DNA of 64,000 nucleotides, taken from the NCBI RefSeq assembly GCF_006345805.1, contig NC_043001.1, forward strand, positions 44,144,001 through 44,208,000, given 5' to 3'. Position 1 is the stretch's first letter; every line of letters starts with the position of its first letter. A program made the position numbers and the translations under genes. The DNA comes from Octopus sinensis. Taxonomy: Eukaryota. Under the pieces are notes generated by a model, which did no database searches, was not told the DNA's origin, and was given only the letters and a program-made list of their open reading frames with translations. Positions 18,601-59,935 of the stretch are shown here, in pieces.

Positions 18601-20261
18601 CCAAGTAAGCAGCTCCAAATGTGAGCTCTGGATCCTCAACCACCCGGCTTTTCAACATCAACCAACTATTGACCTTTTTGCAGAGTCCTCCCCTTCCGTT
18701 GCAGTCTCTCCCCCATCGGCTTGGTACTCTTTAGGTGCCCCAATCACTGACCTTGCCTTTGAGTCTATTTTCCAGTCGAAGGTGGCTGCCATTAAACAAT
18801 TGTTGAAAAATATTGAACCTATCGAACCTCATCAAGGTTTTTTCATACTTAGGAATTACTTCTCGATCCCCAAGCTTCTATATTTATTCATAGTCAGCTC
18901 ATCTCACCGATCCCCATCGTGCCTCCAATGCTTCGACAACCTAATCTTTGAGAGACTCGAATGCATAGTCAATGTCAGACTCTCTCCAACATCCCGCGAT
19001 CAGGCTGCATTGCCCAAGCGATTTGGCGGTCTCCCCCCCTCTCTCTCCTGCTTCCTTTCGTCCACCCACGCCTGCATCACCCTGATGAGTAACATCCTCT
19101 CCTCTCCAACATGGACCAGTTCCAACTGGGAGTTGGATGAAACTCTCCAACACTGGAGGAAATTGGGCTTGTCTGTTCCTGAGAAGGTGGAGGACTGTCG
19201 GAGTTAGAGAGCTTGGGACAACATAATTTTGAAGGCCACCTTCAACTCCCTCTTCATCCAGTCGGACCAACTTTCAAGGTGCCGCTTACTGTTTCCGAGC
19301 GCCAAATATTCAGGTGACTGGATTGATGCTATCCTGTGGCTAATGTTGGTGGCCTACTCAACTTGGACAACCTTCGTGTCTCCATTGCCCTCAGAGTGGA
19401 AGCTGATATATGCACGGGTTTGATCTGTCGTTGTGACAGGCTCTTCGACTCCTCAGGCCTCCATGGCCTTTCTTACCGCCTGAATGCTGGTTGCTTCGAG
19501 CGTCATACGGAGTTGAACCTGATACTAGAGCGGAGATTGGCCCGGGCAAACATCCCCTCCATCTTGGAACCATCTGAATTGTCCAGATGTGATGGAAGGA
19601 GACCTGACAGCCTCACCCTGTACCCCTGGTCGCAAAGTAGATGCCTCGTCTGGGACTCAACAGTTAGCGACTCCTTTGCTTCTTCGCACATCCTGGATGC
19701 TGCGGTCAGGGCGAGATCCACAGCTTCTGCGGCCGAGCGGAACAAAATCCTGAAATACCGCAGTCTTTCGGCCAACTACATTTTCCATCCTGTGGCGTTC
19801 AAGATATTTGGTGGGGTCGGACCACTCACTGCGAGATTCCTATCTTCACTGGTAACTTGCCTTGCAGAAGTAACTGGTGAGGATCGTGAGGGCGCTTGGC
19901 TGTTCCAGCGTATCAGCCTCGCCATCATCCATAGCAACACTGCAAGCGTGCTGGCGTGTCTCAATAGCCATTAGTAAAGTTTCCCAGCGCCCCCAACTTT
20001 GCAACTCAAGGTGGTGAATTGTTTTGTTTTATTTTTTTCTCTTTACTCTTTTACTTGTTTCAGTCACTTGACTGTGGCCATGCTGGAGCACCGCCTTTAG
20101 TCGAGCAAATCGACCCCGGGACTTATTCTTTGTAAGCCCAGTACTTATTCTATCGGTCTCTTTTGCCGAACCGCTAAGTGACGGGGACGTAAGCACACCA
20201 GCATCGGTTGTCAAGCAATGGTAGGGGGACAAACACAGACACACAAACATATACACACATA

Positions 20262-20303
<42 letters not shown>

Positions 20304-21044
20304 TACGACAGGCTTCTTTCAGTTTCCGTCTACCAAATCCACTCACAAGGCATTGGTCGGCCCGGGGCTATAGCAGAAGATACTTGCCCAAGATGCCACG
20401 CAGTGGGACTGAACCCGGAACCATGTGGTTGGTTAGCAAGCTACTTACCACACAGCCACTCCTGCGCCTCTTTGTTCATTCTCTTTTTCTTCTTTTCTTC
20501 CGTTTTTCTTTTTAATTTTTTCACTTGCGTTCTTTGTTTTGTCCAGTTTTCTAGTTTGATTTTGTAAAACGGTAAACACTGTGAAGGCAATTGGGTACTA
20601 CTTAAAAAGAATGGACCCGACGCGCTAGTAAGTAGACTTGTCGGCGCCCGTGATAACACAAAAAAAAAAAAAACTCTCTACATATATAAATATATGTAAA
20701 CTGTAAATCGGAGGTGATGGTGGTGGGAATTTGTCTGTCTGTCTGTCTGTACGTACGTACAAACAAACAAACAACAATAATGAATGAAAATAAAACAAAT
20801 TTTGAAATTGAAATAAAATGTTACTCAAAAGTAGTCATACAGAAAAGTGAGAATAAAACAAATTTCTGATTTTAAAGTGTAAATTCTGAACATTATTTAC
20901 ATTTGAGGGATATTTGTCCTCATCTTGTTAACACAACGTTTCGGCTGAAAACCTTCCAGCCTTCATCAGGTGTCTTGGGGGAATTTCGAACCTGGGTTCT
21001 CATTCGTAAGGTATTTTTCGATGTTGTTGTTGTTGTTGTTGTTG

Positions 21045-21143
<99 letters not shown>

Positions 21144-24100
21144 CAGGTCACTGCCTGGAATCGAACTCGAAATTTTGGGGCTGGTAGCGGGCTACTAACC
21201 CCAAAATTCTCAGTTCGATTCTAGGCAGTGACCTGAATAGTAATGGTAATGATAACAACAACAACATCGAAAATACCTTACGAATGAGAACCCGGGTTCG
21301 AAATTTCCCCAAGACACCTGATGAAGACGGGAGGGTATATCAGCTGAAATGATGAGGACAAACATCCATCAAATGTAAATAATGTACATAATTCCTCATC
21401 TCTTAAATATATAACTGTAAATTCTGAATCTGTTTTTCAAAGCATAAAAATCCAAAGTAAGGTTTAAAAGATTAAACTTAAACAGATAAGGGTTTAACTG
21501 GTATTGGGGGGGGGGGGTTTAAACAGTTGCATAATTTTCTTCTCTGGATAAGGCTGTGTGGTAAGAAGTTTGCTTCTCAGCCTCATAGCTTTTGGTTCAG
21601 TCCCACTATGTGGCACCTTGGAGAAGTGTTTTCTACTACAACCTGGGTTTGGCAAAGCTTTTTATGTGGATTTGGTAGGTTAGTAATGCGGGGGGGGGGG
21701 AGAAAAAATGTGTGTGTGTGTTCCACCTCTTAACAACCTATTTCTTTATTACCCACAAGGGGCTAAACACAGAGGGGACAAACAAGGACAGACATAGGTA
21801 TTAAGTCGATTACATCGACCCCAGTGCGTAACTGGTACTTAATTTATCGACCCCGAAAGGATGAAAGGCAAAGTCGACCTCGGCGGAATTTGAACTCACA
21901 ACGTAACACAGACGAAATACCGCTAAGCATTACGCCTGGCGTGCTAACATTTCTGCCAGCTCGCCACCTCTTAACAACCAGTATTGGTGTATTTACAGCT
22001 CTGTACATGAGTGGTTCAACCAAAGAGACAATAAAACAAATATCAAGACTTAAAAATCACTGGGATTGATTTGTTTAAACTGAAACCTTTAAAAAAAGCG
22101 TGCCAGTATGGTTGCAAACCATAGAAGAAAATACCTGATGAACAGATGGTCTCATACCAGAACTAGTTGAAAATAATTGTTGCTGCTTCTAATCACACTG
22201 TGATTGACTGTGACTAGAAGGAAATATTATGCACACTTCTTGTACTAGATCAGCTATTTATCATTAACCTTTATGTCATGATGGAAATTATTCAAATCAT
22301 TTTTACAGATTCAATCTGTGAGAATTCTCACATTTTTGGAGAGACATTGTATTGGACACCATTAAGCATATGTGACTAAACTGTTTAACGCAGTTATAGT
22401 CAGTAAAGTAAATAAACAGTTTTATACTAGACTTGTCCTATATTTATGACATGTTTTACAACTTTTGATCTTTAATATAGCTGTCCATCAACCATACTCA
22501 TGCTTTTGCAGTCAGCCTTTGAAAACTTGCTTTGCTAGTCATGAGAATCTGAACCAATCATATATATTGCATTTATCTAATGTTATTGTTTAGCCCAAGG
22601 TCATGCCAGATCAATCAGACATATGAAGAAAAGTATTGTAGCTGATATGCTCCCATGATTTATTTATACATCGTATAAGAGAACATTATCCAGTACATTC
22701 TTCTTTAAGTAACTGGGTGTGATTTTAGAAAGACTTAACTGCAGCTTTTTGCACAGTCATGGGCAAACTACGGCCATTAATTATAATTATTACATGTCGA
22801 ACTAACCACCCTTATTAATGCCTTTTGCATTGTAGGTACCTCCCTTGTTTTTTTTTAAACATGGACTTGAATATAAATTAGCCCTGCAGCCTGCTTGATG
22901 ATGAACCATGTCTTATGCAGCCCTCTTCTTGTAAAAGGTTGCCCTTGCCCATTCTAGCAGGTTGAATGACAACATACAGGGTTCATCATTGACTGTTGGC
23001 TTGTCTTAAATTATAAATAAACTACAAGTATCATTATTTCCTTTTTTCCGAGTTGGCAAGGGTTATATGGGTCTTTATGGTCGAAGTCAGGTTCTATTTG
23101 GAATTATTTCTCTTGATGAGTCACAGACCTCATATGTTTCATTTTTTGCATGATTGCTGTGGATGGATGCCCTTCTAACAACAACTATTTTACAAAGTTC
23201 ATTGGGTTCACTTTATCATAGCACCAAAACTAGAGAGATTTTTAGTCCCTACAAGACTGAAGTGGCATTGCTATTTTACTTTGTATGTGTTGTTTCAAAG
23301 TAATATGTCTGACAGGGTGGCAGAAGAGGGAATAAGAGAATCAGAGGAAGAGGATAATAGAAAAAAAGTAAAAGGAAAGAACTACAATGATAAAAGCAAG
23401 GGAGTGTCATAGAAGAGAAAGTCAGAGGGAAGAATCGGAGCAATAGGAGTGAGAGGATGACGAAGGAGAAGATAATAGAAGAGTGAATCGGGATAAACAG
23501 CTATGTGCTGGTTGTTGGTGAGAAGATTTTATAAGAAGACTAGCAGTATCGCCCGGCGTTGCTCGGGTTTGTAAGGGAAATAACTATAAAGCATTTTTAG
23601 AGAGTTATAGCCAAAAAATAGCAAAAAAATGGAAAAAAAATGATGGTAAATTTTTTCTGAGAGTAAAAAAGGTCGAGTTGCGTCCCCTAGACAGTCTGTG
23701 GTTTGTGTTTCTGATTCTCGACCCCATGTCGAATTTATCGATTTTTTTCAGAACTGGGGGAACTTTTCAAAATTTTCGCTGCGTTAGTTTTGAATTATGA
23801 CATTGGGCTATGTGTGTGTCAAGTTTCATCAGAATCGGTTGAAAGCCGTGGTCAGGGTGAGGGTACAACCTAACAGACACACAGACACACACAGACAAAC
23901 TGCCGTTTATATAGAGAGAGATATATATGGTAAGAGTGAGATAGGTTGATGAAAAAGAGAGTGATGGATGTCATTAATGAATGATGAAAGAGGTAGTAAT
24001 GGGGAAGTGAGTGAGAGAAGGATGCTGGGTGGAAGAGAAATAAAGAAATGAGACAATAGGGGGATCTGGATACAGACAGATCCAATCTTGTCCCTTGTTA

Positions 24101-27100
24101 CACAAGTGGTGTGATGGAAGAGAGGTAACAACAAGGGGACATAGAGATAGGAAAGAGGATCAAACAAAATTGAAACTGTGAGAATGATTGATGGAGATTT
24201 AATATGAATGTAATGGTTGGGGGAGACCCAAGTGTAAATATTATATATTCCTGTTTCTACCTCCATTTTACCATGCTTGAATGTGTTGGATAGGTTTTTC
24301 TCTATCACAAGGCTTCACCACATGTTGTGGTTGGTCTTTTGTCATATCCTTCATTATTTCCAGCCTTCCTCATTTCATCCCACTTGTCCCTTCTATAGGT
24401 TTCATACATTTGGAGTCCACAACACTTCTTTATACAACTGATATTCTCTAATATTCTCTATATTCATAACAAACCCATGTTATGAATAGCCTCTCTCTTT
24501 CACACTACATAGCCTCTCTCTTTCACACTACACCTGATTCTTATATTCAGCTTTTCTCTCAGCTCATTTGTGCTTTGTCATTCATGCACACTAATATTAC
24601 ATAGCCAGTGGTTTATGCATATCTCATTTCCTTCAAGTCATCGCAAATTTTCTGCATCCTAACCATTATACTTCAACTTTGAGTATCATACAACCTGCAC
24701 TAATAGCTCTTTGAACTTTCCCCACCACCACCACCACCACATTCTTACTGCAGTAACTATACCTTCAAAATGTCAACCTCAATTAATCAGCTACCCAGGT
24801 AATAAACGCTATTAACTACTTTTAGGATGCTTTCATGACAGTTGAAAGAATCTATTTCATGTGTTCTTTCCTTTTATTAATTTAAAATTGTTTAAATTTC
24901 AGAAATATGGTGAATGATAGCCATAGTAAACTGCACAAAAACGAGGAGCGATTTTCCCCATTTCGACAATGGAGACGTCCTGACCTACCAAGTCGTTGCA
25001 CTTACCACGCAAGTTCAAAAAAAGTGGAAGATTCACCACATTTGCATAAATCTGTGTAGGTATATTTATAACGTGCTTATCTTTGTTGTGTTTTTCTTTG
25101 TTACTTTTTAACCACTCTGTGGAACCTTAGGCAAGTGTCTTCTATGATGACCTCACATTGACTAATACCTTGAGTAAAATTTGGCTGAGAGATACTGTGT
25201 GTGTGTGTTTAAATATGATTGTTTTGTATTTGATAGCATAAAAGACAGTGACATATTAGATGCACCCCAATTTTAGCAGCGCACATTCTGGATAATGTTT
25301 TTAGTGTTTTAAACCATGTAATATATGCCCAACTTTGCATATAGGACTTGACCCAGGGTGATCTTTTTTTTTTCTTTTTGAGACATTCTTTTAGAATGTT
25401 ATATGCCATCAAATACAGTAACATTTTTACAGAAGATAAAAACAAAGTAAATAATTGATAAATGATTGATAATGGTGTCTTACTACATTTAAGCCACTGC
25501 TTCATTAAGGTGTGATTATGATCAGAGACATGCACCTACATCTGAATGCAAATATCTAAAATTGAAAAATCCATTCCATAATTTCAGTCACTTAACTACT
25601 AGCATATAGCACTATTCCTCTACTGTCTAACGTAATCAAATATCACACTTTATACTTAGTTTATGATGATAATTAACCCCCAAAATAAGAATAATTATAA
25701 AAAATCAAGGGATAAAATTATTTTGCAGTTTTAGATTATTACTTGCAAAATGTTTTATAATATCAATTATTAAATTTTAACCATCTGTTACATCTGTTTT
25801 TAGAGACTAACATGTGTTACGTGAATATATGTTATTGAGGTTGGCAGGAAATGTCAACAAATGTTACAAGTGTAGCTCAATGTGTCTTCATACAAATCGC
25901 AGAATATAAACATTCGCATTGATACATATATGCACTCACACACACACATGCATGTGCACATGCACACACACATTGAGTTTCCAGACTGTATCTGTTTTCA
26001 AAGTTCATTTGTGAGGTGGTGGTTGGCTGGCCAAAAGCTACATAGAAGACGCCTGCTTAACATACTGTGTAGTGGGACTGAACTTAAAACCACATGGTTG
26101 AGAAACGAACTTCTTAACTACACTGCCAATTTATAACATATATGTTTTACAATATTGGATACTGGAGTGGATTGTGGAGCCTACTACTGAGCCCAACTTT
26201 GCTTTGCTTCACCCTTTTTTTTTGTGTGTGTGTGTGTGTGTGTGTGTACCTTAATAACTAAGAAGGCAGGCAAATCACAAATTACTTCAGGTAGATGGCC
26301 CTGCTCAATTTGTAGAAAAGGTGTAGGTAGAAACTCCATGAGGTGCACCCAGTGTAAGCTTTGGACAGACAAAAGGTGCAGCAACATCAGAGGAAGGTTA
26401 ACAAGGAAACTAAATTTTGTATGTGGAAGATGCACATAAACACTGAAAATGCACAGAAAATAGACTCCATCAATTTCCAGGGAGACAAGATAGAGGTAGT
26501 AGATAGCTTCTGTTATTTAGGTGACCAAGTTAGTTGTGGAGGTGGATGCTCCGAGAGCATAGCTGTGAGAATAAGATTAGGCTGGGCAAATTTCAGAGGG
26601 TTCCTATACTTGATGGCAACATAGGGCCTCTCTCTTAGAGTAAAAGGCAGATTTTTTGATGCCTATGTCAGAACACTATGCTGCATGGCAGGGAAACAGC
26701 CAAGGAATTGCATAGGCTTGACAGAACTGTACCCAGTATGCTTCGCTGGATGTGCAGTGTCAGTGTGCATGTTCAACAGAGTGTAAGCATTTTCAGAGAA
26801 AAGTTAGGCATAAGAGCATCAGATGTGGTGTGCAAGAGAGACAAGTGTGCTGGTATGGTCATGTGATGAATATGGACAAGGACAGCTGTGTAAAGAGTGC
26901 TGATCTCTAACTGTGGAGGGAACCTGTGGCAGAGGTAGACCCAGGAAGACATGGGATGAAGTGGTGAAGCATGATCTTTGAACTTTGAGCCTTACAAAGG
27001 CAATGACTGGTGACCAAGACCTTTGGCAATGCACTATGCATGAGACAACCCATCAAGCCAAGTGTACCTGTGCTGGTGGCACATAAAGAACATCTTTTTG

Positions 27101-30100
27101 AACCTCATGAAGGCAAAATGGCTTAGTTATTTTCGAGAGTTGGGCCTCATGGATGCAAAGTGGCTAAATTCCATTCAAGTGTTGGGCCTCATGGAGGCAA
27201 AGTGGCTGAGTTCCTTTCGAGCATTGAGCTTCATGGACACAAAGCAGCTGAGTTCCTTTCGAGCATTGGGCCTCATGGAGGGAAAGTGGCTGAGTTTCTT
27301 TTGAGTGTTGGGCCTCACAGAAGCAAAGTGGTTGAGTTCCTTTGGCTTTATGTCTTGCTTGAGAAGTTTCATCAAGCCAAGCAAAATCCTAGTCATGGCA
27401 GATACTGGTGGCACGTAAATGCACCTTGGTATCATACAAACGGCACCCACGCCAGTGGCACATAAAAGCACCCATTACACTCTCAGAGTGGTTGGCATTA
27501 GGATGGATGTTCAGACTTCCAGTGTGCTAGCCCAGTCAAACTGTTCAACTCATGCCAGCATGGACAACGGACATTAAATAATGATGGTAATGGTGAAGTA
27601 CATAAGTCAGGAAACAATGCTCTTGTATATCTGTCAATAGAGTAGGTATATTAATCGAAGTATACAGTATTATATATCCATTTTGGCTGATCTTACGAAT
27701 CAGTTTCACACTAGGAATTCAATGGAGTATTAGGTAACAGTCCAATTATGTATCTCTGCGCTCATCAGAGGTAGCCATTATCGAATGAAATATGGTGACT
27801 TTGTTTCATTACAGCTACTTCTGATGAGCACAGGGTTACATAATCAGACTGTTACCTAACACTCCATTGATTCTCTAGCGTTAAACCGATTGGTAAGATC
27901 AGCCTTAATGGATATATAATACTATACACTTCAATTAATAAATATATATATATATAAAACTTCTGTGTACAGTTAGATGAACAACTACTATTGTATGAAT
28001 TAGAGCTCCATATAGATTATCATTATCCGGTTACCTTCCAGTGTAGTAGTTAGTTGACCACTGTACTTAGCAGAGTTACTAATTATCAAATACTGAACTT
28101 ATGTTGTGGAAATTAAGATAAACACCAGAATAAATATTTAGTTCTTATGTAAGTTTCCCCATTGCAGTTATTTAGAATTCAGCATTGAATGTTCCAAATG
28201 CATTTGGATGTCTGACTGCACTGGATCATTGGGGTAATGCTTTGTTGCAGTCTGTTTAATTTTCTTCTTTCCTATTGGACTTTCTACTGTTTCTGAAGAA
28301 GAGCTTTACTCGAAACATTAAACCATCTTTCTTTCCTTCCCTGAGCATCTGCTAATACTTTACATGTACCACATCCTCGCGTTGTTATTTTGTGTTTGTT
28401 CTTCATTTTGTTTTGATTTATATATATATATACTAGCAAACTTATCCACCTACGATGGGTGATAAGAGCAGGGTAGAAATCGAGACAATTTAAGTTGTAA
28501 TGTATTTATTTTTAGTCATTTGATAGTGCTAAACTATATAGTGTACCTTATTGAACAATATATATGTAAACATTTACATAACACGTTCATGGTGCTATCT
28601 TTATAAAACCTCTTTGTAAACAATATTCTCCATTTGTCCTCAATTAAGTTTCAAATTAGCTGAATCTGTTGCCTTACTCATCGCTACATACAGCTGGCCA
28701 TACGTGAACATGGTGTGATCCAAAGTCTGGCCCTGAGACTTTGTTGGCCGTAAAGGAGAAGGCTAATTTGATAGGAAACTGCCTGCATTGTAACTGAAAT
28801 GGAAACTATCTGAAGGCATCAGAGGTATCTGTGGTATAAACAAATGTGTGCCAGTGTGAGGACCAGTTGCTATCACTGCTTCGATGACGTGAGAGATAAG
28901 TTCCATTAGCTGGGTCAAAATTCTGAAGCAGCATAATCAGACAACCCTTCTTCAAAGTTATTTTGTGTACTGGTAGTCCTGATGAATAAAACTTTTTTGC
29001 TACATTTTAATTAATGTGTAATATAATGCATGCATATCATGTCATCAACTGTTTTATACATCATAGTATGATACATAGTAGGAAAACTTACCAGAGCAAA
29101 AGTCCTAAGTGTTGACTGTAGACACGTTCCTTCGCAAATGATCAGCTATTATTTTGTAAACAATGTTTCGAAACTGTTCATGTGTTTGAAAGGAGAGATG
29201 TGACTCCCAAACTCACAGGTTCCCAAAGTTACTTCATTCGACAATATAACTCAATAGAGGGAGAAGGGTGAGTGTGGGGCGTGGAGGGAAGAGGAGGTCA
29301 AACTGATCTCTAGGGGAAAAGGTAGGCCTCTTTATTCCTCTTACACGACTTATGTCTGGATGCCAAATTTGCCTCAATTGATGGTATTACTCGGGTAGAG
29401 GGTGGTAGTGGGGCAGGGGCAGAAGGAAGAGGTCAAGCATTTCCCTTTAGGAGGGTATAGGCCATCCTATACCTTCTGCCAAAATTGTCTCCAGGTGCCA
29501 AAGTTACCTCAATTGATGGAATTTCTCGGAAAATAGGGTGGGGGATGGGGGAGAAACTAAACCTATATATATATAAACCACCCTAGAGATCCCACGAACA
29601 CTCCTACAAAGTTTCATGCCAATTGGCCTAACTGTTTGGCCGTGATGTGAGTACAGACGGACATTAAACCCATTATAGTATGATATGAGCAGAATTTAGG
29701 TTAGTTGATCTCAAAGCACACATAAATAACATATAAATAATAGGCTTAAAAACCCTTTTGGACAGAAAATTGAATGTTGGCCATGGGACACAAACACATA
29801 CCTCCTTTGACTTTTTCTATACAAAAGGGGCTTCCAACCCATTAGTTACATGCTATAATCTATTATATAAAATCCGTTCTGTCTGTCTGTGTGTGTGTCT
29901 TTTAGGATCTCAGGCATCCTCCATCCGATTGCACTCAAATTTGATATGTAGATACTGACGGTATCAGGGCATGTATAAGTCTTGAAAAAATTACAAAAAT
30001 CGATTCCAGGTGAGAATGTGATCGATAAAGCTGTGGGAACATGCATTTGTACATGCCAGTACATTAGCTGTTGCGATTGATACTATGTGTACATGAGAAA

Positions 30101-30679
30101 AATGCATGTGCAGTTTGTGCAAAAAAAGCTGGCTGGCTTGAAATAATGCCACAAAATGGGATGGTCGGACAAGTTGTTTTGAGAAAATTTGGTTTAAATG
30201 TTTGACAACTCAGCACCTTCTATTGGACGGGGTGGGGGGCGTTTTGCTCATATATACATGTCTGTTGGTTATATATTTATATGTACGTACACTACCGTCA
30301 GAAATTAATTAGCACCCTTGATTTGCTCTTCACTCAAGGTATGTGCTGTCACCTAGTGGCCATATCTCGAACTATTGCTTTGTTGCGAGTTCACTGTTGC
30401 GCAGAACGATGATGTAACTTTGTTTGCAGAGCAGTTTGAGAGTCTACAGCCTTATGATGTTGACATAGCAGTGCAACAACAACTTGGAGTGCGGATGCAG
30501 ACAAATCTTCCTTTGTTTAATAGATATAGGTAGCGCCTCGCAAGGACCGAAATCACACCATACTAAGTTTTCTCATCGCGTAAGACGTTTTGAACAGCTC
30601 ATAGGTTAATTGATTTAACCTATTTAATGCAGAAATTTGAGAAGTGCTAATTAATTTCTGACGCAAGTGTATATGTACG

Positions 30680-30742
<63 letters not shown>

Positions 30743-33700
30743 TTAGCAATTAAGGACAACTACTTAATAAGGAAAACTTAACAAGAAATTGTCAGGTAGA
30801 TAGCGTGAAAACCTCATAAGAGAAAAAATTTCGAAAATAATTATTTCTTATTGAACATATTAATTTATATATAGAGGGCATTATACATACATGCCAGAGG
30901 GCATTATACATACATGCCACACGCTAAGAGGGACAATTAGTCATTTCTACCAAAAATATTACTAATCCCACCGAATGCAATTTTTCAAAGTAAGACATTT
31001 AAAAAATATAGACCTGTATCACAGTGATTTCATACTTACGTATTCATCAGCAGGCCTGAATGTATCATAAATAAACGACCCTGTCCCGCTGAAGCCGATC
31101 AGCTAACTGATCAACATCAACGAAGCACATGGGTGAGTTTACATATATTACATCCTGTAAATGGCATACTTTTACGAATTGCATTTCGGGAAAGGAAAAG
31201 GTTTTTCGGAATAAAAATTTAACAATTAAGGACAACTACTTAATAAGGAAAACTTAACAAGAAATTGTCAGGTAGATAGCGTGAAAACCTCATAAGAGAA
31301 AAAATTTCAAAAATAATTATTTCTTATTGAACATATTAATTTATATATAGAGGGCATTATACATACATGCCAGAGGGCATTATACATACATGCCACACGC
31401 TAAGAGGGACAATTAGTCATTTCTACCAAAAATATTACTAATCCCACCGAATGCAATTTTTCAAAGTAAGATATTTAAAAAATATAGACCTGTATCACAG
31501 TGATTTCATACTTACGTATTCATCAGCAGGCCTGAATGTATCATAAATAAACGACCCTGTCCCGCTTAAGCCGATCAGCTAACTGATCAACATCAACGAA
31601 GCACATGGGTGAGTTTACATATATTACATCCTGTAAATGGCATACTTTTACGAATTGCATTTCGGGAAAGGAAAAGGTTTTTCGGAATAAAAATTTAACA
31701 ATTAAGGACAACTACTTAATAAGGAAAACTTAACAAGAAATTGTCAGGTAGATAGCGTGAAAACCTCATAAGAGAAAAAATTTCGAAAATAATTATTTCT
31801 TATTGAACATATTAATTTATATATAGAGGGCATTATACATACATGCCAGAGGGCATTATACATACATGCCACACGCTAAGAGGGACAATTAGTCATTTCT
31901 ACCAAAAATATTACTAATCCCACCGAATGCAATTTTTCAAAGTAAGATATTTAAAAAATATAGACCTGTATCACAGTGATTTCATACTTACGTATTCATC
32001 AGCAGGCCTGAATGTATCATAAATAAACGACCCTGTCCCGCTTAAGCCGATCAGCTAACTGATCAACATCAACGAAGCACATGGTGAGTTTACATATATT
32101 ACATCCTGTAAATGGCATACTTTTACGAATTGCATTTCGGGAAAGGAAAAGTTTTTTCGGAATAAAAATTTAGCAATTAAGGACAACTACTTAATAAGGA
32201 AAACTTAACAAGAAATTGTCAGGTAGATAGCGTGAAAACCTCATAAGAGAAAAAATTTCGAAAATAATTATTTCTTATTGAACATATTAATTTATATATA
32301 GAGGGCTTTATACATACATTATACATACATACAATAAGAAATAATTATTTTCGAAATTTTTTCTCTTATGAGGTTTTCATGCTATCTACCTGACAATTTC
32401 TTGTTAAGTTTTCCTTATTAAGTAGTTGTCCTTAATTGCTAAATTTTTATTCCGAAAAAACTTTTCCTTTCCCGAAATGCAATTCGTAAAAGTATGCCAT
32501 TTACAGGATGTAATATATGTAAACTCACCCATGTGCTTCGTTGATGTTGATCAGTTAGCTGATCGACTTAAGCGGGACAGGGTCGTTTATTTATGATACA
32601 TTCAGGCCTGCTGATGAATACGTAAGTATGAAATCACTGTGATACAGGTCTATATTTTTTAAATGTCTTACTTTGAAAAATTGCATTCGGTGGGATTAGT
32701 AATATTTTTGGTAGAAATGACTAATTGTCCCTCTTAGTGTGTGGCATGTATGTATAATGCCCTCTGGCATGTATGTATAATGCCCTCTATATATAAATTA
32801 ATATGTTCAATAAGAAATAATTATTTTCGAAATTTTTTCTCTTATGAGGTTTTCACGCTATCTACCTGACAATTTCTTGTTAAGTTTTCCTTATTAAGTA
32901 GTTGTCCTTAATTGCTAAATTTTTATTCCGAAAAAACTTTTCCTTTCCCGAAATGCAATTCGTAAAAGTATGCCATTTACAGGATGTAATATATGTAAAC
33001 TCACCCATGTGCTTCGTTGATGTTGATCAGTTAGCTGATCGGCTTAAGCGGGACAGGGTCGTTTATTTATGATACATTCAGGCCTGCTGATGAATACGTA
33101 AGTATGAAATCACTGTGATACAGGTCTATATTTTTTAAATGTCTTACTTTGAAAAATTGCATTCGGTGGGATTAGTAATATTTTTGGTAGAAATGACTAA
33201 TTGTCCCTCTTAGCGTGTGGCATGTATGTATAATGCCCTCTGGCATGTATGTATAATACCCTCTATATATAAATTTATATATATATATATATATATATAA
33301 ATCTTTGTATAATTGTCTGCATGTATGTATATACTTGTTGGTAGGTTTAATGTAAATATATAGATGTTTATCTATGTACCTATTATTTATTTATCTGCAT
33401 GTATATATGTACTTATGTAAGTATCACTCTCTCTGAATATATATGTATATACACACACATATGTTGCATATGCATATACTACATATATATGTGTGTGTGT
33501 GTACACACACAAAGAGAGAGAAATTCAATATATATATATATATATATATTTTACTTATCTGTCCTACATAGTTGTTTTTTTACATATGAATTAACCTGAT
33601 TCAAATATCTGTTTACATAGCTATCTTAACATAGTGGAGAGTTAAAGTATATAGTCATTATTGCTGTTTTGCAGTCATGACCCATGGATTAAAACGTCCA

Positions 33701-36700
33701 CTTTGCTACTTTTTGGTTTTGTGTTTTAATCTACTGTATGGAGCCTTGAGAAAATGTCTTCCTCCATAACTTCAAACTTTGAAATATATTGTGTTTTCTA
33801 ACTCTAGGTTTTTTGAGGCATCTCTCCCAGATGTAATGCATAACAAGCTTTTAATAACATATTTTCATGTGGTATGGCTCATCCAGTGGGAAACCAAGCT
33901 TACCTACTTTCAAAGACCTGCCTTTCTAGCTGAATGCTGCTAAAGTTTCACTTGTAGAGGAGATCTGATCAGTTAGATATGCTCTCATTTCTATGAAACT
34001 CTGGCTGGTGACTTTGCGAGTCTCCACCTGCTCATCTACAAATAGAAACTGTGCTTAATGTACTGAATGAATTTTTGCTTTTGTTTTGCCTGTCTGTCTG
34101 TCTGTCTCAATCTATCTATCTATCTCATGCACACATGTGTGTAAAATCCTACATTTTATTAATTACTTACATGCACATGTAGCTGTATGATTGGGAAATT
34201 TGTTTCCCTGCCACATGTTTTGAATTCAATCCCATTGCTTGGCACCTTGGGCAAGTGTTTTCAGTTGTAGCCCCAAGTTAACTAAAACCTTGTGAGTGGA
34301 ATTAAATGACAGAAACTGAAAGATGCTCATTGCACATATATACGTGTGTGTGTGTGTGGTTGTGACTACTTGTTTTGACATCATGTAATTATTGTAAATG
34401 TGCGTCACTGTCATACAACATTCTGCAAAGTCATGTCTAACCATGGAGAAACATTACCTTGCTTGGAAACAGGTGAAGAAGGGCATCTAGCCATGAAAAT
34501 CTGCTTCAGTAAACTCCATTCAACCCATTCAAGCATGGAACAGTGGATGTCAAAATGATGATTATCAAAATCTAACTTCAAATACATAAAAGGCTTTCAG
34601 GCTTTTAACTCTGTGCCACACAAAAGACTTATGGTGAAGCTCTCTGCGTTGGGCATAAGAGACGAACTCTATAACTGGTTGAAGTCCTTGATTTTCGGCC
34701 AAAAAGAGGTTGTCACAGTTCTAGGACAGCACTCTTCGCCCTATGAGATGACATCTGGTGTACCACAGGGATCTGTTCTTGGCCCCCTTTTATTTGTTGC
34801 ATATGTTAATGACATAGATACCAACTTAAAGAATGCCACAGTGCTGAAATATGCAGATGACATCAAGCTGTACCTCGAAATAAAGAGGTCAGATCCTGTA
34901 CACTATAGATCTCTATTGCAAGCAGACCTGGACACAATGCAGCAGTGGCTCATGGACTGGCAACTCAAGCTGGCTGTGGACAAATGTACCACTATGCATT
35001 TTGGGAGGAGAAACCCAGCGTCCACCTACTCCCTCCACAACACTAGTCTCAAAAAGTCTTCATGTGAACGTGACCTGGGTGTTATTGTCGACAGTGATTT
35101 GCGTTGGACAAAACACATCGCTAAAATTGTCAACAAGGCTGAGGGTGTCTTGCCTTACTTCCCTGGGCATGGACACATTGAAACTCCAACGTCTGGCAGC
35201 TGACTTGGCAGACACCCATAAAATTATCAACCATCGTACAAACAATAACTCTGAGCACCTTTTCAAACTCCACCCACCTAACACCCGTGGACATATTTAC
35301 AAAGTCAGAAAACAGCACAGCTCCCATGACTTTAGGAAACATTTTTTCACGCTGAGAGTTGCTGAAGCATGGAACAAACTGCTGGCATCAGTTGTTAGTT
35401 GTTGGAGCACTGCATCCTTCAAAACTTCCATGCTTTCTGAGATTCGCCAACACTACACCTGATTTTCTCCCCTCCATACACACACAAGCATGTATCTGAC
35501 TCATGCATTGTTCGCTTTCCAGACATTTGTACATTACTGCATGTGCTTTATATGCGCTGTCTGACAAGTTGTGGTGCACCTGAGCACTGTATACAATAAT
35601 TTCATTATTATAAACTCTTTCATGTATCATATTTACCTTTTATTTGTACATTCAAATACAAATCTTTGTGTGAATTCAGACATATCACCATGCATGTTTA
35701 ATTCATGGTGCAAATCTTGTGTTGAATTTTACAGAAATAATAAATATTTTAATGGCATTAGCAATTGAAAAGTTTTGTCTTGATTGTTAAAATCTTATTG
35801 ATTTATTTACATCATTGTTTGCAGTAAACCCCGTCCCAAAATTTTGGATAATATTCTACAGAATATTGGTAACACGCCTTTGGTGAGAATAAACAGAATT
35901 ACTCAGAAGGAAGGAGTGAAGTGTGAAGTCTGTAAGTATCTAAATATTTTCATTAATTTTTGGTATCCACCAAGCACTCTTTTGCAGTTCATTAAGTATA
36001 CACTTACAGCAATAGTTCTGGACGACTTTGCCTTTCATCCTTTCGGGGTCGATAAATTAAGTACCAGTTACACACTGGGGTCGATGTAATCGACTTAATC
36101 CATTTGTCTGTCCCATCTATGTTTAGCCCTCTGTGGGCAATAAAGAAATAAGAATATGTTTGGACATGTTTGAGAGCAAATCCATCTTATAAAAGATGAA
36201 GTTTGTTGAATCAATAAGTTTTAGTATCATTAACCTTGAGCTTTCTGTACTGAATGATTGTACACTGTTGCTTCAGTAGATCTAAATAGAAGCACAGGTA
36301 TGGCTGTGTGGTAAGAAGCTTGATTCCCAATCATGTGGTTCCATGTTATGTCTCATTGCATAGCACCTTCAGCAAGTGTCTTCTATAGCCTTGCACTGAC
36401 CAAAGCCTTGAGTGGATTTGGTAAACAGAAACTGATAGAAGCCCATTGTACATCCTCCTACCATCACTTGACAACTGATACTTGTGTGTTTATGCCCACT
36501 TAGCAGTTTGGCAAAAGGGGTGGTAGAATAAGTACTAAGGGTCAAATTCTTTGACTAAAACCCTTTAATGCAGTGCTTCAGCATGGCCACAGTCAAATGA
36601 CTGAAATCAGTAAAAGAAAAGAATAAAGAATAGTAAATGTTCGAGAATTTAGTTATTGGATTCTGACAATGCTGGGGCACTGACTTGAAGGGTTTAATTG

Positions 36701-39700
36701 AACTAATTGATCCCAGTTCATGTTTTTTTTCCCTTTGTTAAATGTGGTATTTATTCCATCAGTCTCTTGCTGAACTATTAAGTACCAGGGATGTAAACAA
36801 ACTAATATTGGTTGTCAAGCGGTTGGGCAGGGGCAAACACAAACCCACACACACACATAGATATACATGTATACAATGGGCTTCCACATGTTCCGTCAAG
36901 CAAATTCCCTCTCAAGACATTGGCAGGCTCAGAGCTGGGAACTATAAGTAATATTGTAGAAGACACTTGCCTGAAGTGCCTCACAGTGGGACTGAACTCA
37001 GAACCATGTGGTTGCAGTCATTCTTGCACATAACTAAATATTAATTATTGTAAATTTTGTGCTATGCATCATCATCATCATCATTATCATTTAGCTTCTT
37101 TCAGTTTCTGTCTATCAAATCCACTCTTGAGGATTTGTTTGGCCCAAGGCTATAGAAGATACTTGCCCAAGGTGCCACATTGTGAGACTGAACCAAGAAC
37201 CATGTGGTTGAGAAGCAAACTTCTTACCACACAGCCACGTCTGTGCCTCTAGCTTAATGTGATTATTTGAAAAGAAAATGATGACAGTGATTCGAATGTA
37301 TGTTATTAGAGTAACACTGAAAAGCAGTGTTCAGTAGGTCATGTCAAGTAGAACCTATGAACACAACCCAGTCAGAAATTGTATCACACATTTTCCAAAC
37401 AAAAAATGGGAGAAACAGTCTAAAATCATAGTTGTAGCCAACTTTTATCTTTTTTCTATTATTAACAAGAAATTATTATTTTTTTTTAATAAAATGAAAT
37501 AAGTGAATAGTAATTCTGAAAACCACTTTTCACTAACGACTTTATGGTTGTCAGGAGAAATCAATAATTACTATTGACAAAAATGATAACATAAAAATAA
37601 TTCAGTCTCAGATGAATGGGCAAAGGGGGTGGAGGTGGGAGAAAAATCAATAAATCTATGAAATACTTACTCGTATCAATTTAAATAAATAGTAATGTGA
37701 CACACAAACTTATATATGTGCAATGACACCAGCATGTTACAGACATATCCATCTGTGCATGCCACTACTGTATGCTATGGACTCCATACCCCATCCATGT
37801 GCACACCACATGGCTTAGTAAGAATATTTGGTTCACAATCATAGGGTCACTAGTTCAATTCTTGGTGGCATGTGTCCTTGAGCAAGACATTTAATATCAT
37901 GTTGCTCCAATCCAGTCATTGGGTACAAACAAGTAGCAACTGTATTTCAAAGGGTCAGCCTTGTCCCATTCTGTGCCACACTAAATCTCCCTGAAAATTA
38001 CGTTAAACATACATGCGTTTGTGGTGTATTCAGCCACTTGCATGTCAGTTTCATGAGCAGAATACTCTGTCGATCAGATAAACTGGAAAACTTGTCATAA
38101 CTGATGGAGAGCCAGTTTGTGCACACAGTTACCAGTATTTTACAGACCTGTACATATGTGCATGCCCTTGAGAGCATACTACAGAGCTATCCATGAGTTT
38201 GGTTACCATTGACAAGATCTATGATCAAACACAACCCAGCTGTGACCATCTCTCATAAATTTAGTTAATATATAGGTGCAGGAGTGGCTGTGTGGTAAGT
38301 AACTTGCTTACCAACCACATGGTTCTGTGTTCAGTCCCACTGTGTGACACCTTGGGCAAAGTATCTTCTACTATTGCCTTGGGCTGACCAAAGTCTTGTG
38401 AGTGGATTTGTTAGACGGAAACTGAAAGAAGCCCATCGTATATATGTATATGTGTGTGTGTGTGTGTGTTTGTCCCCACAACATCGCTTAACAATCGATG
38501 CTGGTGTGTTTACATCACCATAACTTAGCGGCTTGGCAAAAGAGACCGGTAGAATAAGTACTAGGCTTATAAAGAATAAGTCCTGGGGGTCGATTTGCTC
38601 AACTAAAAAGCGGTGCTCCAGCATGGCCGCAGTCAAATAACTGAAACAGGTAAAAAAAAAAAAAGAAAATAAAAGAGTATGTATTGAAATATCAAACTGC
38701 TGCTTGGAACATTTGTTCATTTGTTTGTTTAATGTCTGTCATTTTCCATGCTAGTAGAGCTTGGGTGAAAATTGATTTTAAGTTAAGATTTTATGACCAG
38801 ATGCTCTTATTACCAATCCTTAAATGTTTTTCTTTTAAGTAAGGGATTTTTTTTTAATATTCCAGAGTAGTTGGGAAGCATAGAGCTATGGTCATAATGT
38901 TAACCCCTTGACAACAGTTGACGCAAATATGCGATCGCACTTTTGCTTGCCTACCCACAGTTAACGTAAATATACGATGTAGAGCTGCCCTATATCTATC
39001 ACGGACTTTTTAGCGGCTGACGTATGTTTACGTTCGCTATCGTGTACTTTATCTCTTGTGGTGCGCTTACTCGCTGTCCCGTGCATTTTCTTAGCTATTT
39101 TAGGTTACGTTCAAGTCATGAGACTAGCAGTAGACTAATGATATGTGGATACTTTACATGCATATGCATTGGTACAGGTGGTATAAAAGTAACGGTCTCC
39201 AACAAAAATGCATCATAATTCAAAATGTCTTCAAATCAATTACAACAAATTCTGCGTTCATGCTTCGCTCCTCCATCAGCGAATTTACGTTCGTCATCGC
39301 GCCTGATAAATGAAATTATTGAAGTTTCTGAGCTGTCTAACTACAGAACGCATGGACGTCCTCACACCCGACTGACATTTCCCACGCTTCATACCACCAA
39401 TGGAAAAAAAGCAGAATTCGGCATGGAAATGTGTTGTATGCACCTAACACCACTGTAGGCATGAAACTAGATATCATTGTCCTTTGCCTAATACCGTGTT
39501 TTGAGTTGTACCACGCGCAGGCTATTTTTTTAACTTGAACAGAATAACTCGTGCATATCATATTTAGATAAATAGCTTCACATAGTTCGTTTTCATAAAC
39601 TGGTTGACATAAATGTACGAGACTATGGTGAATGTAAATAGACACGAACTCGTTGGCACTTGTGTGTTTGTGTTGCCTCATTAGAAAGAAAAACCGGAGC

Positions 39701-45700: not shown

Positions 45701-48700
45701 GCACACCCTCCCCCACTACTGACTTGGTCACCTAGGTAACGGAAGCTATCAACTACTTCTAGTTTTTCTCCCTGGAATGTGGCGAAAGTTGTTCTCTGCA
45801 CATTTTCAGTGTTTATTGCTCCTGAGCATCTGTCACATACAAAAACTATCTTCCCAGTTAATCTTCTTTTGATATTGCTGCACCTTCTATGTGTCCATAG
45901 CTTACACTGGGTACATCTTATAGAGTTTCTATCTACGCCTTTTCTACAGATTGAGCAGGGCCATCTACCTGAAGGGATTTGTGGTTTGCCTGCCTTTCTA
46001 CTTATTAGGACTTTGGCGAGCTGGCAGAAACATTAGCACGCCGCGAAATGCGTAACTGTATTTTGTCTGCCGTTACATTCTGAGTTCAAATTCCGCTGAG
46101 GTCGACTTCGCCTTTCATCCTTTCAGGGTTGATAAATTAAGTACCAGTTATGCACTGGGGTCGATATAATCGACTTAATCCATTTGTCTGTCTTTGTTTG
46201 TCCTCTCTGTGTGTAGTAAAGAAATAGGTTTTAGCTAGGTTGACTCTAAGGCCCTTCAATTCTAATCCTTGTTTCCAGACCTGAAACTTCTCCTCTGGTT
46301 CTAATAGTGACTCAGCAATTAGAGCAAGGTCATCAGCATAGAGGAGCTCCCAGGGGCATCCTGTCTTGAATTCCTCTGTTATTGTCTGGAGGGCTATGAT
46401 AAATAGGAGGGGACTGAGGACTGAACCTTGGTGGAATTCTTCACTGTACTCATTGCCAACCCTCACCTTACTGACAGCGTCCCTGTACATGGCTTGCACA
46501 GCTCTCACTAACCATTCATCTATCCCTAGTTTCCTCATTGACCACCAGATAAGGGATTGGGGGACCCTGTCAAAGGCTTTCTCCATGTCAACGAAAGCCA
46601 GGTACAGAGGTTTATCTTTGGCTAGGTATTTCTCCTGCAGCTGTCTTACCAGAAATATAACATCAGTGATGCTTTTCCATATATATTTCAGTATCGTAAT
46701 CCCATGAATCCAGTTGCACATTATGATGGCACTGCTGAAGAAATTTTAAAAGATACAGATGGTAAGTCTGTTGATTTGTTTTTTCCTTTTACATATAAAA
46801 GCACTTAGAGAACATTTAGTTCTCAGATTGATCTGCTAAAGGTATTGGATAAATGATCCCTCTATAGGTGAAACTCCAGAAATAGTACTGATATTTATTA
46901 TGATAAAGAAGACAAAAGAAAATTATAGCATGGAGGACATATGAGGATTACTAAAAGAGAAAATGTTGTAAGCCACTAATAAGTTCTATGGCTGGAGAAA
47001 GGCTTCATCCAAGAAGTAGGTGACATGGTGGTGGGATAATACACAAAGTAAATATTGCTGTATGAGCAAAGTGACAGGCCTCCAAGTAGTGGGAGAAAAG
47101 GAATAGCAAGGAGTGATAAGATGGTATGTGAGAAGTAAAATATCAGAAGTCTCTACCCAAGAGAAAAAGCTGAAAGTGGGAGGTTTACTATTGTTCTGAA
47201 CCATAAAAATGAGAAATATGAATTATTCCAAATTTCAAAGCACTGCATTCATATGAATCAGAATGTTCTTGAGGGTGGAGTGTGTCTAAAAGAACACTGG
47301 TACTATTTACTTCCAGTGGTAGGGGAAAGAAAGAGGCATGGAAATGCTACAATGTTTGGTTGTTGAGTGGAACATGTAGGACTTCCCAAGAGGAATTGAC
47401 CAAGAGACAACTATTGAGATATCTTTGGCAAGGTTAGTAAAGCTGTTAAGGAATTTTCAGTTGGAAAAGGAGCAGATCTATTTCAGTTAGTTACTGAGAT
47501 GTTGAAGACATCATGTTATATAAATCCTATACTAATTATTTGCCAAGTTAATCAGATTGTGTGGGGAAGGGCTGATTTAAGTTTTAGTAAAGTTAATTCA
47601 GAGTAAAAGTAATATGGATAAGATACAGTTTATAATCACTAGTGATGTGTTTCTTGTGAGATAATTGCAAGAAAATTCCATAACTTAGAAGCAGCTTCTC
47701 TACTTTGTCAATCTTTTGAGAAAGTTCCTCATTTTGGTGAATATCCAGCAAACTAAATGTAGATTGATGATTTGTAAAAGTTGTATGAGAATGGTTTTTG
47801 TAAGATTAGGTAGGATTAGTGATGAAGTATTTTGGAAATAAGTCTGTATACAAAAGCTGGTTCTTTGTCTACCTTTTATTCATTCTGGTCCTTGAGAATG
47901 CAAGAGTTCAAGAGGACTGATCATCCTTACAATTAAGCTGATGATCTAGTTCTAATGGCAGAATTTGTTCAAAAGTTGAAGTAAAGATTCCAAATCTTGG
48001 ATAATAGTTTAAGCAGCCTAAAAGTCAGTATATGAAAGGCTAAAGTGGTTGTTATGCGAGAAAACCTGAATCCCAGAGCCACTTGGGAAGTGGTTCTGCC
48101 TGATGCTTTGGCAAGGGTAAGATAGAAAGTCAGTGCATACAACATGTGCAGAAATATTTTTGTGTGGTTGGTAAAGTCAAGACTAGATTTACCAATGAGA
48201 AAAAGGGAGAAATTAATTTGAACATTACTCGAGCATCATGAAACAAAGAGCACAGAAAAACAAACTTTTGTATAGTTAGAAATTAGCAGAATCACTCCGG
48301 CCCTTGTAGAATAATTTAATAATTGGAGCTCATGTAGAATGATTTGAAAGTAAATCATATAAACTGAAACAAATTCAACGGCTTCAAACGGTTGTGTTAC
48401 TCAAAAAAGAAAAGTACATATACAAATGCACATACACACATGCACATGCCTGTGCACACTCATGCACATGCATGCTCACACAATGTACATGCACATGCAT
48501 GTGTACACTCACACACACACATGTGCACGCGCTCACACACACACATACATTAATGATATTTATTGTCTAAACTTATCTATCTTAAACTTAAATAGTAGCA
48601 AAGATGTAAGCCATGACTAGTTTTTATGTTCATTTTATTAGGACTTAATTGACACTAGTGCAAATATCACTAATCTGACATTGTCACTTTGACTTTTTCA

Positions 48701-57700: not shown

Positions 57701-59884
57701 AGGATAAACTAGAAATTCTCTGACTAATGCTATGCACTAGTGCATTTTTAATTTGAGGGGGGTGATTACTTGAACGGTTAATATATATTAGGTTAGAATT
57801 AGGTTTAATATAAGGTTCATGTAATCCATTAGTAATGTTACAATTAACATCTAAATAATTAGCAGAATAATTTTCACTTTCAATGATAATGGATAGGCCG
57901 AAATATTGCTATTCCAATATATTATGATGTCGATACTGTGAACCGCGTGATGCATATATTGTTGTTATTAATAATAATAATATTAATATTAGTAGCAATG
58001 GTGCTAATGGTAATAATAATGATGGTAATATTAATGGCATTTTGTAACTTAATATAATGAACTCTTGACTTTGTATATCATCATCATCATCATCATCGTT
58101 TAACGTCCGTTTTCCGCGCTAGCACGGGTTGGACGGTTTGACCGGGGTCTGGGAAGCCAGGGGCCGCTCCAGGCTCCAGTCTGATCTGGCAGAGTTTCTA
58201 CGGCTGGATGCCCTTCCTAACGCCAACCACTCCGCGAGTGGAGTGGGTGCTTTTTACGTGCCACCTGCACAGGGGCCGGGGGGTCCGGCATCGGTCACGA
58301 TCGGTTCGAGCTTTTCTAGAGTTGAGTTTGGGGGGGGTCCAGCTGAGAAAGGTTCCACCAGTGAAAAGAGAGGGAGAGATAGTAGGGGAGTGCAGGTAAT
58401 ATAGGGAAGCACCAGTGGGGAAGGTTGGGGTAAGGAGGAACGATGACAGGGAAGGGTTAGTGCAGGTTCGTAAAAAATAAAAACGTAGGATATCACGAGG
58501 CGGGGAGGGGACTGGAAGGAGATAGTCGGATTGAGGCAGTGACAGATTCAAAACAGGAGGTAACGTAAGATCAGTGGGGCGGTTCATGAGCTGCGGCGCT
58601 AGCAGCTTGTCTTGGTGGGGGGAAGGGGTAGTACACAGTGAAAGCATGTGAGGAGGAGGGGTAGGAGGGAGAGACACACGTAATGGTGGTGGGGAGGAGG
58701 AGCGCATATCCGGTGTAGATGGTGAGAACAGTGTTCACCGGTATTGGTGGTGGGAGGGCGGGGGCATCGCCAAATGGCGGAAAGATGGAATTAAGGATTG
58801 AAGGTAACCTTAAACGGTTAAATTTCGTAGAGAAAGATAGGAAAAACAAAGCAAGTTAAGACATTTAACGAATGAGCAACGAATGAGAGGTACGAAAGAT
58901 AAATGAGATAAAAATCTTATATGTGCATTTAAATATAGATATGTGTATGTTTGTATATTGTAATATTCTAATATATTGTGTTGACCAACTGTAACCTTGA
59001 ATATAGAACATATGTATGTATATTGTTGTATATTATTATATATATGTGTGTGTATATATATATATATATGAGTATGGGTATATGCACTCATATGCATGTG
59101 TATATTATATATTATGGGTATGTACCCACTCTTGTATGGGTGTACCTCCTCTGATATTTATATTTAGTTTAGTTTGTACTTTATAATCTCTGAAGAGGCC
59201 TTGGGATATTTTTTTAAGTGTCTCATTTATAACCGCATATTAACTTATCACACCTGGCTAATATGAGCATAATGAGATACCCATATCTGCATGGCTGAAA
59301 CAGCTGTAAGATGTAGTTTATATTTATATTCACTTATACATATTGTATCATATTACTCATTGATGTGCATTGTTTTGTTCTATACTGTTATGTTTGACCT
59401 TGATGTTCATATGTAGTGGGTTAATAAATTATGTGATTGGGTATTATATGGTAGTTGATTATTGATTAAGGTGTATTTTTCCATTTTCTTATTTTGTATA
59501 TATATATATATAGACTCAGGAGTGGCTGTGTGGTAAGTAGCTTGCTTACCAGCTACATGGTTCCGGGTTCAGTCCCACTGCATGGCAACTTGGGCAAGTG
59601 TTTTCTACTATAGCCTTGGGTCGACCAAAGCCTTGTGAGTGGATTTGGTAGACGGAAACTGAAAGAAGCCCATCGTATATATGTGTGTGTGTCTGTGTTT
59701 GTCCCCCAACATCGCTTGACAACTGATGCTGGTGTGTTTACGTTTCCAGAAACTTAGCAGTTCGGCAAAAGAGACTGATAGAATAAGTACTAGGCTTACA
59801 AAGAATATGTCCTGTGGTCGATTTCTTCGACTAAAAGCAGTGCTCCAGCATGGCCACAGTCAAATGACTGAAACAAGTAAAAGA

Positions 59885-59935
<51 letters not shown>

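Follow-up and report, generated by a model that had tools for sequence, protein, structure and literature searches.

Intron 2 of the CBS gene of Octopus sinensis contains a ~2.5-kb array of 476-bp units that is probably a genomic copy of a retrozyme without long terminal repeats (non-LTR retrozyme), that is, a non-autonomous retroelement of tandem hammerhead-bearing units, in this case with a (TA)n microsatellite as its insertion site. The array lies within the 64,000 nucleotides of contig NC_043001.1 (assembly GCF_006345805.1, positions 44,144,001 to 44,208,000 of the forward strand) that were analysed, referred to below as the window and numbered from its first nucleotide. Animal type I hammerheads residing in AT-rich tandem repeats of 150-450 bp define the non-LTR retrozymes, which are expressed as circular RNAs (circRNAs); their multimeric transcripts self-cleave and the monomers are circularized mainly by RtcB (PMC7229834). 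More recently the range of unit lengths has been widened to 51-972 bp and the elements have been tied to the pseudo-LTRs (pLTRs) of Penelope-like elements (bioRxiv 10.64898/2026.07.22.740005).

The hammerhead-like motif

A type I hammerhead descriptor (helix I of at least 5 bp, CUGANGA, helix II of at least 4 bp, GAAA, and helix III of at least 3 bp closed by A15.1-U16.1, with H17 other than G) finds exactly five matches in the window, two on the plus strand and three on the minus strand (Table 1), where the string CTGATGA-N16-GAAA occupies positions 32611-32633 and 33087-33109 (+) and 31028-31050, 31504-31526 and 31980-32002 (-). The five share one identical 48-nt sequence, reading AGGCCUG, CUGAUGA, AUAC-GUAA-GUAU, GAA, AUCA-CUG-UGAU, A and, beyond the predicted cut, CAGGUCU. 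Helix I is formed by 7 bp (one G-U) and is open, giving the type I topology, while helix II has 4 bp and a GUAA loop (a GNRA-type loop 2) and helix III has 4 bp and a CUG loop. The 11 invariant positions of the hammerhead core (C3 U4 G5 A6 N7 G8 A9 ... G12 A13 A14) are present in the correct register in 5/5 units, A15.1-U16.1 closes helix III, and the cleavage triplet is AUA (permitted), with A17 at 32644 and 33120. Dinucleotide shuffles of the window match the descriptor at a rate of 0.003 per 64 kb (1 of 300 shuffles with a match); the five copies amount to one independent event because they are located in one 476-bp tandem repeat. Four other CTGATGA...GAAA strings (5488, 21318, 22135 and 52932) fail the canonical descriptor and were rejected; a further one, at 20939, belongs to a minimal hammerhead of the Penelope type described below. 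An alternative register with a bulged A in helix II, as in Penelope-type hammerheads, was likewise discarded since it would leave an unpaired U before G12.

These results agree with the structural part of an earlier reading of this DNA (the original prediction), which had placed two hammerheads on the transcribed strand of CBS within a 10.8-kb intron 2. The length of the intron and the strand of the gene are correct, the two motifs are identical 48-nt sequences on the plus strand, and the cuts foreseen after 32644 and 33120, 476 nt apart, coincide exactly with the H17 positions assigned by the descriptor. The pathway that it invoked, hammerhead cleavage followed by RtcB ligation into a circRNA, is documented for repeats of this kind (PMC7229834).

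Table 1. Features of the array and its host intron, in window coordinates
Feature	Position	Strand	Basis
CBS intron 2, host of the array, 10,769 nt	25056..35824	+	tblastn of O. sinensis XP_029636803.1 and splice-site reading
(TA)n/(TG)n microsatellite, left edge; target site, possible target-site duplication	30680..30742	.	Tandem Repeats Finder (TRF); filled versus empty site
Inverted block, 3.33 units	30735..32319	-	TRF 30741-32319, period 476, 3.3 copies, 99%; monomer blastn 98.7-99.4%
Hammerhead-like motif antisense to CBS	31010..31057	-	descriptor; H17 at 31017
Hammerhead-like motif antisense to CBS	31486..31533	-	descriptor; H17 at 31493; pairs with sense motif #2 in the minimum free energy (MFE) fold
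Hammerhead-like motif antisense to CBS	31962..32009	-	descriptor; H17 at 31969; pairs with sense motif #1 in the MFE fold
37-nt spacer where the two blocks meet head to head	32288..32324	.	between inverted-repeat arms 32083-32287 and 32325-32529
Direct block, 2.0 units, CBS sense orientation	32332..33280	+	TRF period 476, 2.0 copies, 98%; monomer blastn
Hammerhead-like sense motif #1	32604..32651	+	descriptor; helix I AGGCCUG/CAGGUCU; predicted cut after 32644
Predicted 476-nt cut-to-cut monomer (retrozyme RNA unit)	32645..33120	+	predicted cuts, folding
Hammerhead-like sense motif #2, identical to #1	33080..33127	+	descriptor; predicted cut after 33120
(TA)n microsatellite, right edge	33264..33299	.	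TRF; filled versus empty site

The 476-bp unit and the geometry of the array

The array holds 5.3 units in total, 98-99% identical to each other and with a GC content of about 0.32-0.34. It consists of units only, set between microsatellite flanks, and has no LTR, primer-binding site (PBS) or polypurine tract (PPT). Read in RNA sense, the minus-strand block starts at the centre with monomer position 125 (32319) and reaches the left flank with position 282 (30735), while the plus-strand block passes from the centre to the right flank through positions 165-476, one full unit and positions 1-160. The two blocks are thus arranged head to head, with their RNA-sense 5' ends at the centre and their 3' ends abutting (TA)n with TA-rich microhomology. 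Each unit contains an internal 23-bp direct duplication (two copies of TGGCATGTATGTATAATGCCCTC, e.g. 32742-32788), which the monomer fold shows as a strong hairpin, and the junction of the blocks, including its spacer, falls in this duplicated 23-nt hairpin segment.

The hammerhead-sense monomer is predicted to be highly structured (MFE of -131.9 kcal/mol; relative to 100 shuffled sequences, z is -6.2). In a circular fold it retains -125.2 kcal/mol (z -6.7), with 66% of its nucleotides paired and both helix I and helix II of the motif intact, whereas the antisense strand of the monomer reaches only -95.3 kcal/mol (z -3.9). Among the units 14 alignment columns are variable, 0 of them inside the motif, which is not significant. 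Open reading frames (ORFs) of 56 and 42 aa in the monomer have no exact match in protein and contig indexes, searching for homologues with four concatenated monomer ORFs gave no match, and the pattern CTGATGAATACNNNNGTATGAAATCA has 0 matches in metagenome or viral contigs.

Insertion site and age

From 13616 to 64000 the window is 100% identical to the O. sinensis locus on CM016863.1 (GCA_006345805.1). The orthologous loci of O. vulgaris (GCA_951406725.2, coordinates prefixed L001) and of the outgroup O. bimaculoides served for comparison. In O. vulgaris the site is empty: L001 10471-18762 corresponds to window 22391-30738 and L001 18724-24188 to window 33264-38744, and these flanks, 97-98% identical to the window, are directly joined. 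O. bimaculoides is likewise empty at the orthologous site in CBS intron 2, and the CBS loci of both species show neither similarity to the monomer nor a match to the hammerhead descriptor. The filled site has (TA)n at both edges where the empty site has one shorter (TA)n. Since both species are empty, the ancestral state was empty and the insertion took place in the O. sinensis lineage. Judged from this comparison of genomes, the array is a young insertion that postdates the split from O. vulgaris, and its mobility is supported by the same presence/absence pattern (filled in O. sinensis, empty in two sister species). Divergence within the array of ~1%, against ~2.1-2.7% between the O. sinensis and O. 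vulgaris flanks, is consistent with this age. Elsewhere the two loci differ by ~2.8 kb found only in the window (11102-13931, upstream of the start of the CBS gene) and by ~1.7 kb found only in O. vulgaris (L001 8790-10471).

Weighing the assignment

Several observations weigh against the identification of the array as a retrozyme with a functional hammerhead. The Rfam hammerhead families (Hammerhead_1, 3 and II, HH9 and HH10) give 0 matches at the gathering score, and no hammerhead family appears at E<=10 when 7-kb and 141-nt slices are searched. The pair 10.1-11.1, where G-C is conserved, is A-U. Helix III as an isolated hairpin is unstable (+0.8 kcal/mol), and the nearest-neighbour MFE favours a UGAU:AUCA misfold over helix III (-12.1 vs -9.7 kcal/mol). 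There is no covariation evidence, as 5/5 motifs are identical and no relatives were retrieved. At the level of the array, variants are common to adjacent units, a misfit with a single rolling-circle copy followed by independent point mutation alone, which implies later unequal exchange or heterogeneous templates. No ORF for a Penelope-like reverse transcriptase (RT) or endonuclease was recognized in the window, and the inverted block rests on one PacBio-based O. sinensis assembly. The matches that Rfam did return were to microRNA and small nucleolar RNA families, on AT/TG microsatellites and on the palindrome, and were judged spurious.

The objections to the motif are partly answered by precedent and by the sequence of helix III. 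G10.1-C11.1 is the most conserved hammerhead pair after 15.1-16.1 (PMC4209133, PMC3088659), and naturally active hammerheads with other pairs at this position are known, for example U-U (PMC3088659). In amphibian retrozymes whose helix III is weak, efficient cleavage requires dimers (PMC7229834). In the octopus motif the helix III segment, AUCACUGUGAU, is near-palindromic, so two motifs can form an intermolecular helix III duplex of 10 bp (-10.1 kcal/mol); folded together, the two spontaneously adopt a double hammerhead (-31.1 vs 2 x -12.1 kcal/mol). As helix III is unstable alone, the motif probably acts as a dimer. We regard it as quite likely that the array motif is a genuine retrozyme hammerhead and that it probably depends on dimerization.

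The array might instead be an ordinary satellite or tandem repeat whose hammerhead segment has decayed or was never functional, with no transcript that self-cleaves. The missing Rfam match at any threshold, the A-U pair, the weak helix III with its competing alternative pairing and the lack of covariation data would all be expected of such an inactive look-alike. However, the 11 core positions, A15.1-U16.1, the AUA triplet and three helices co-occur, with 0.003 matches per 64 kb expected by chance, and they do so in exactly the genomic context of functional type I hammerheads. The excess of structure differs between the two strands of the monomer, the near-palindromic helix III fits dimer action as in amphibian retrozymes, and the recent insertion implies a recently active, RNA-mediated element. 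Taken together these make an inactive repeat unlikely.

Less probable still is an assembly artefact, in which the inverted block or the whole insertion derives from a fold-back or chimeric read and the real intron carries no sense hammerheads. Beyond the dependence on a single assembly, tandem and inverted Penelope-like structures have been noted as a cause of assembly problems (PMC8557442), and instability is to be expected of a palindrome of 950 bp whose arms are only 37 nt apart. Against this, the arms differ at ~1% of sites and the units that face each other are not identical, while the junction is asymmetric with a monomer-derived spacer and is not a perfect fold-back. Inverted 5'-truncated copies are moreover normal for Penelope-like insertions (PMC8557442).

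The array in the CBS transcript

A CBS probe locates the gene on the plus strand, its exons following in order between 24901 and 63951, and the concatenated exons match Octopus CBS proteins. Intron 2 begins with a GTAGGT donor and ends with a TTTGCAG acceptor, and the array lies 5.7 kb from the former and 2.5 kb from the latter. The intact annotated CBS of O. sinensis suggests that the insertion is tolerated. Upstream of the array, intron 2 also contains a 42-bp tandem repeat (27103-27343, 5.7 copies, 79% matches).

Since the blocks are head to head, read-through in either direction transcribes the antisense units before the sense units. The complementary strand is therefore present when a sense motif emerges, so that the hairpin should zip up co-transcriptionally and mask the ribozymes. 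When the CBS-sense RNA from 30700 to 33330 is folded, the MFE structure (-1794 kcal/mol) has 977 bp across the centre and pairs 48/48 nt of each sense motif with an antisense motif (Table 1), whereas in the sense block folded by itself helices I and II of the motif are kept. On these predictions the ribozymes carried by the CBS pre-mRNA should be masked inside a ~1-kb hairpin.

The original prediction went further, proposing that the CBS pre-mRNA supplies both sense hammerheads, that the excised 476-nt RNA is circularized and that cleavage competes with the splicing of intron 2 and thereby tunes CBS, with effects on transsulfuration and H2S. The two motifs do lie on the transcribed strand, 476 nt apart and with the 3' splice site ~2.7 kb downstream; they would suffice for a double hammerhead, and the kobs (observed rate constant) of retrozyme hammerheads, 0.1-0.8 per min, could in principle compete with splicing (PMC7229834). 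However, CBS transcription as a source of circular monomers is not supported, since both motifs are paired throughout with antisense units that are transcribed first. Neither is a tuning of splicing or of transsulfuration and H2S output, given a young, lineage-specific insertion with masked motifs, a non-canonical A10.1-U11.1 closing pair and no Rfam match. The appeal to conserved intronic ribozymes also fails, the array being absent from the orthologous intron of both O. vulgaris and O. bimaculoides and hence no conserved regulatory feature. In Xenopus ~43% of retrozyme copies are intronic, yet introns are depleted of them, a depletion interpreted as selection against genic insertion and not as co-option (bioRxiv 10.64898/2026.07.22.740005). 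Excision from the CBS pre-mRNA is thus very unlikely, and an evolved role in CBS splicing or H2S control finds no support. Most far-fetched is a variant in which ADAR hyper-editing or helicases loosen the ~1-kb double-stranded RNA (dsRNA) and unmask the sense hammerheads, coupling editing to intron 2 cleavage, release of a 476-nt circRNA and CBS expression that differs from that of O. vulgaris.

For a retrozyme, the expected route runs through other transcripts. A multimer transcribed in hammerhead polarity would cut itself between AUA and C, probably through a double hammerhead of two motifs as in other members of the class, and only transcripts that begin within the array and head outwards are expected to release monomers; from the plus-strand block, such a transcript would yield one 476-nt monomer. 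Rather than undergo ribozyme excision, the CBS pre-mRNA would most likely carry a long dsRNA in its intron, which is a candidate substrate for ADAR or RNA interference. Octopus is known for heavy RNA editing.

Penelope-like sequences and other repeats in the window

Penelope-like elements, which have been reported from Octopus spp., typically leave partial tandems next to a 5'-truncated copy in inverse orientation, with a preference for (TA)n (PMC8557442), and hammerheads of the Penelope type work as dimers (PMC4209133). By analogy with this geometry, we infer that Penelope-like machinery may have integrated the array; a circular or multimeric RNA would have been reverse-transcribed with priming from both sides of the target.

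CBS intron 1 harbours a minimal hammerhead of the Penelope type at 20930-20974 (-), in antisense orientation to the gene and ~10 kb upstream of the array. It reads GACAC, CUGAUGA, A, GGCUG..CAGCC, GAAA, CGU, U and, after the cut, GUGUU, with an extra nucleotide after A9, G10.1-C11.1, a helix I of 5 bp and a helix III whose ACGU is palindromic (0/300 shuffles match by chance). Its inverted partner at 21277-21375 (+) has lost the cleavage site to a 13-nt deletion in O. sinensis, whereas O. vulgaris keeps both arms (L001 7273-7390 (-) and 7593-7711 (+)). Between the arms lie a (GTT)n microsatellite and a central palindrome in which GGTTCGAA strings resemble a tRNA B box.

Other coding remnants are scattered through the window. 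Three consecutive ORFs at 17545-19974 (+) (217, 235 and 212 aa; GC 0.43-0.51), also present in O. vulgaris, carry the motifs PGIDG and RPD...WD.TV and are probably a degraded non-LTR retrotransposon; they were rejected as a Penelope-like element, having no Pfam match and motifs that in our judgement look LINE-like (long interspersed nuclear element). ORF fragments matching Pfam RVT_1 occur in CBS introns at 34613-35203 (+) (E 5e-20), only ~1.3 kb downstream of the array, and at 46137-46721 (-) (E 2e-18), and by their look are LINE-type remnants. An asparagine-rich ORF of 424 aa at 56463-57737 (-), in a stretch with GC of 0.25, has no Pfam match at E<=0.01; its end is Cys-rich and followed by a GIY-YIG-like VVYQCTV...RVYIGAT...IKQRLNYH. 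Finally, an interspersed repeat of ~390 bp, with three copies in both orientations (20038-20469, 38267-38655 and 59517-59887), encodes a peptide resembling CP.CH.VGLNPE and is a source of spurious tblastn matches.

Discussion

Were the element active, ribozyme-made circRNAs of the retrozyme type would reach the cephalopods, and a natural hammerhead with an A-U pair at 10.1-11.1 would be added to those known. It would also offer an insertion dated by its presence in O. sinensis and by the empty site of O. vulgaris, with the full tandem/inverted, (TA)n-targeted signature that links retrozymes to Penelope-like integration. The locus further provides a natural test case for how cells handle a ~1-kb hairpin of ribozyme units within an essential metabolic gene; on transsulfuration or H2S regulation it has no current bearing. 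No description of such elements in octopus was found in the literature searched, and the supplement of a retrozyme paper contains no octopus or cephalopod entry and no occurrence of the helix II string.

Among conserved intronic self-cleaving ribozymes, the CPEB3 ribozyme, which resembles that of hepatitis delta virus (HDV-like), and the amniote HH9 and HH10 hammerheads each consist of a single motif that is deeply conserved at its orthologous position. The octopus array resembles them in that a motif of self-cleaving type occupies the sense strand of a protein-coding gene's intron, but differs in that its motif belongs to a multi-copy mobile repeat, is absent in sister species and is masked by its own inverted copies. 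A parallel in sequence and predicted fold is offered by ADAR-edited inverted Alu pairs and by the hairpin RNA (hpRNA) loci of Drosophila that yield endogenous small interfering RNAs, since the octopus arms of ~950 nt are 98% complementary, 37 nt apart and part of one transcript. Unlike those loci, the arms carry ribozyme-bearing retrozyme units.

With Penelope-like elements (Cervera & de la Pena 2014; Craig et al. 2021) the array shares partial tandems, a 5'-truncated copy in inverse orientation and a (TA)n target, and its motifs are predicted to work as dimers, as the hammerheads of Penelope-like pLTRs do. It differs from these elements in having no RT or GIY-YIG ORF in or beside it, and from the minimal Penelope-type hammerheads in having a canonical-style helix III and no extra nucleotide between A9 and 10.1.

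The closest correspondence is with the metazoan non-LTR retrozymes (Cervera & de la Pena 2020, Nucleic Acids Research), exemplified by those of coral, mussel and axolotl and by newt satellite 2. Like these, the octopus array has one type I hammerhead per unit in short AT-rich tandems without LTR, PBS or PPT, encodes a monomer RNA predicted to be strongly self-paired with the hammerhead left free, and is a recent insertion with a flanking repeat; like the axolotl and newt elements in particular, it has a weak, near-palindromic helix III that suggests dimer action. It departs from them in the A-U instead of G-C pair closing helix II, in having no Rfam match, in a helix III of 4 bp with a 3-nt loop, and in its cephalopod host. 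The unit of 476 bp exceeds the 170-400 nt stressed in PMC7229834, yet falls within the wider range of the later preprint. The element is best filed as an extension of the known non-LTR retrozyme class to a cephalopod, with an atypical hammerhead.

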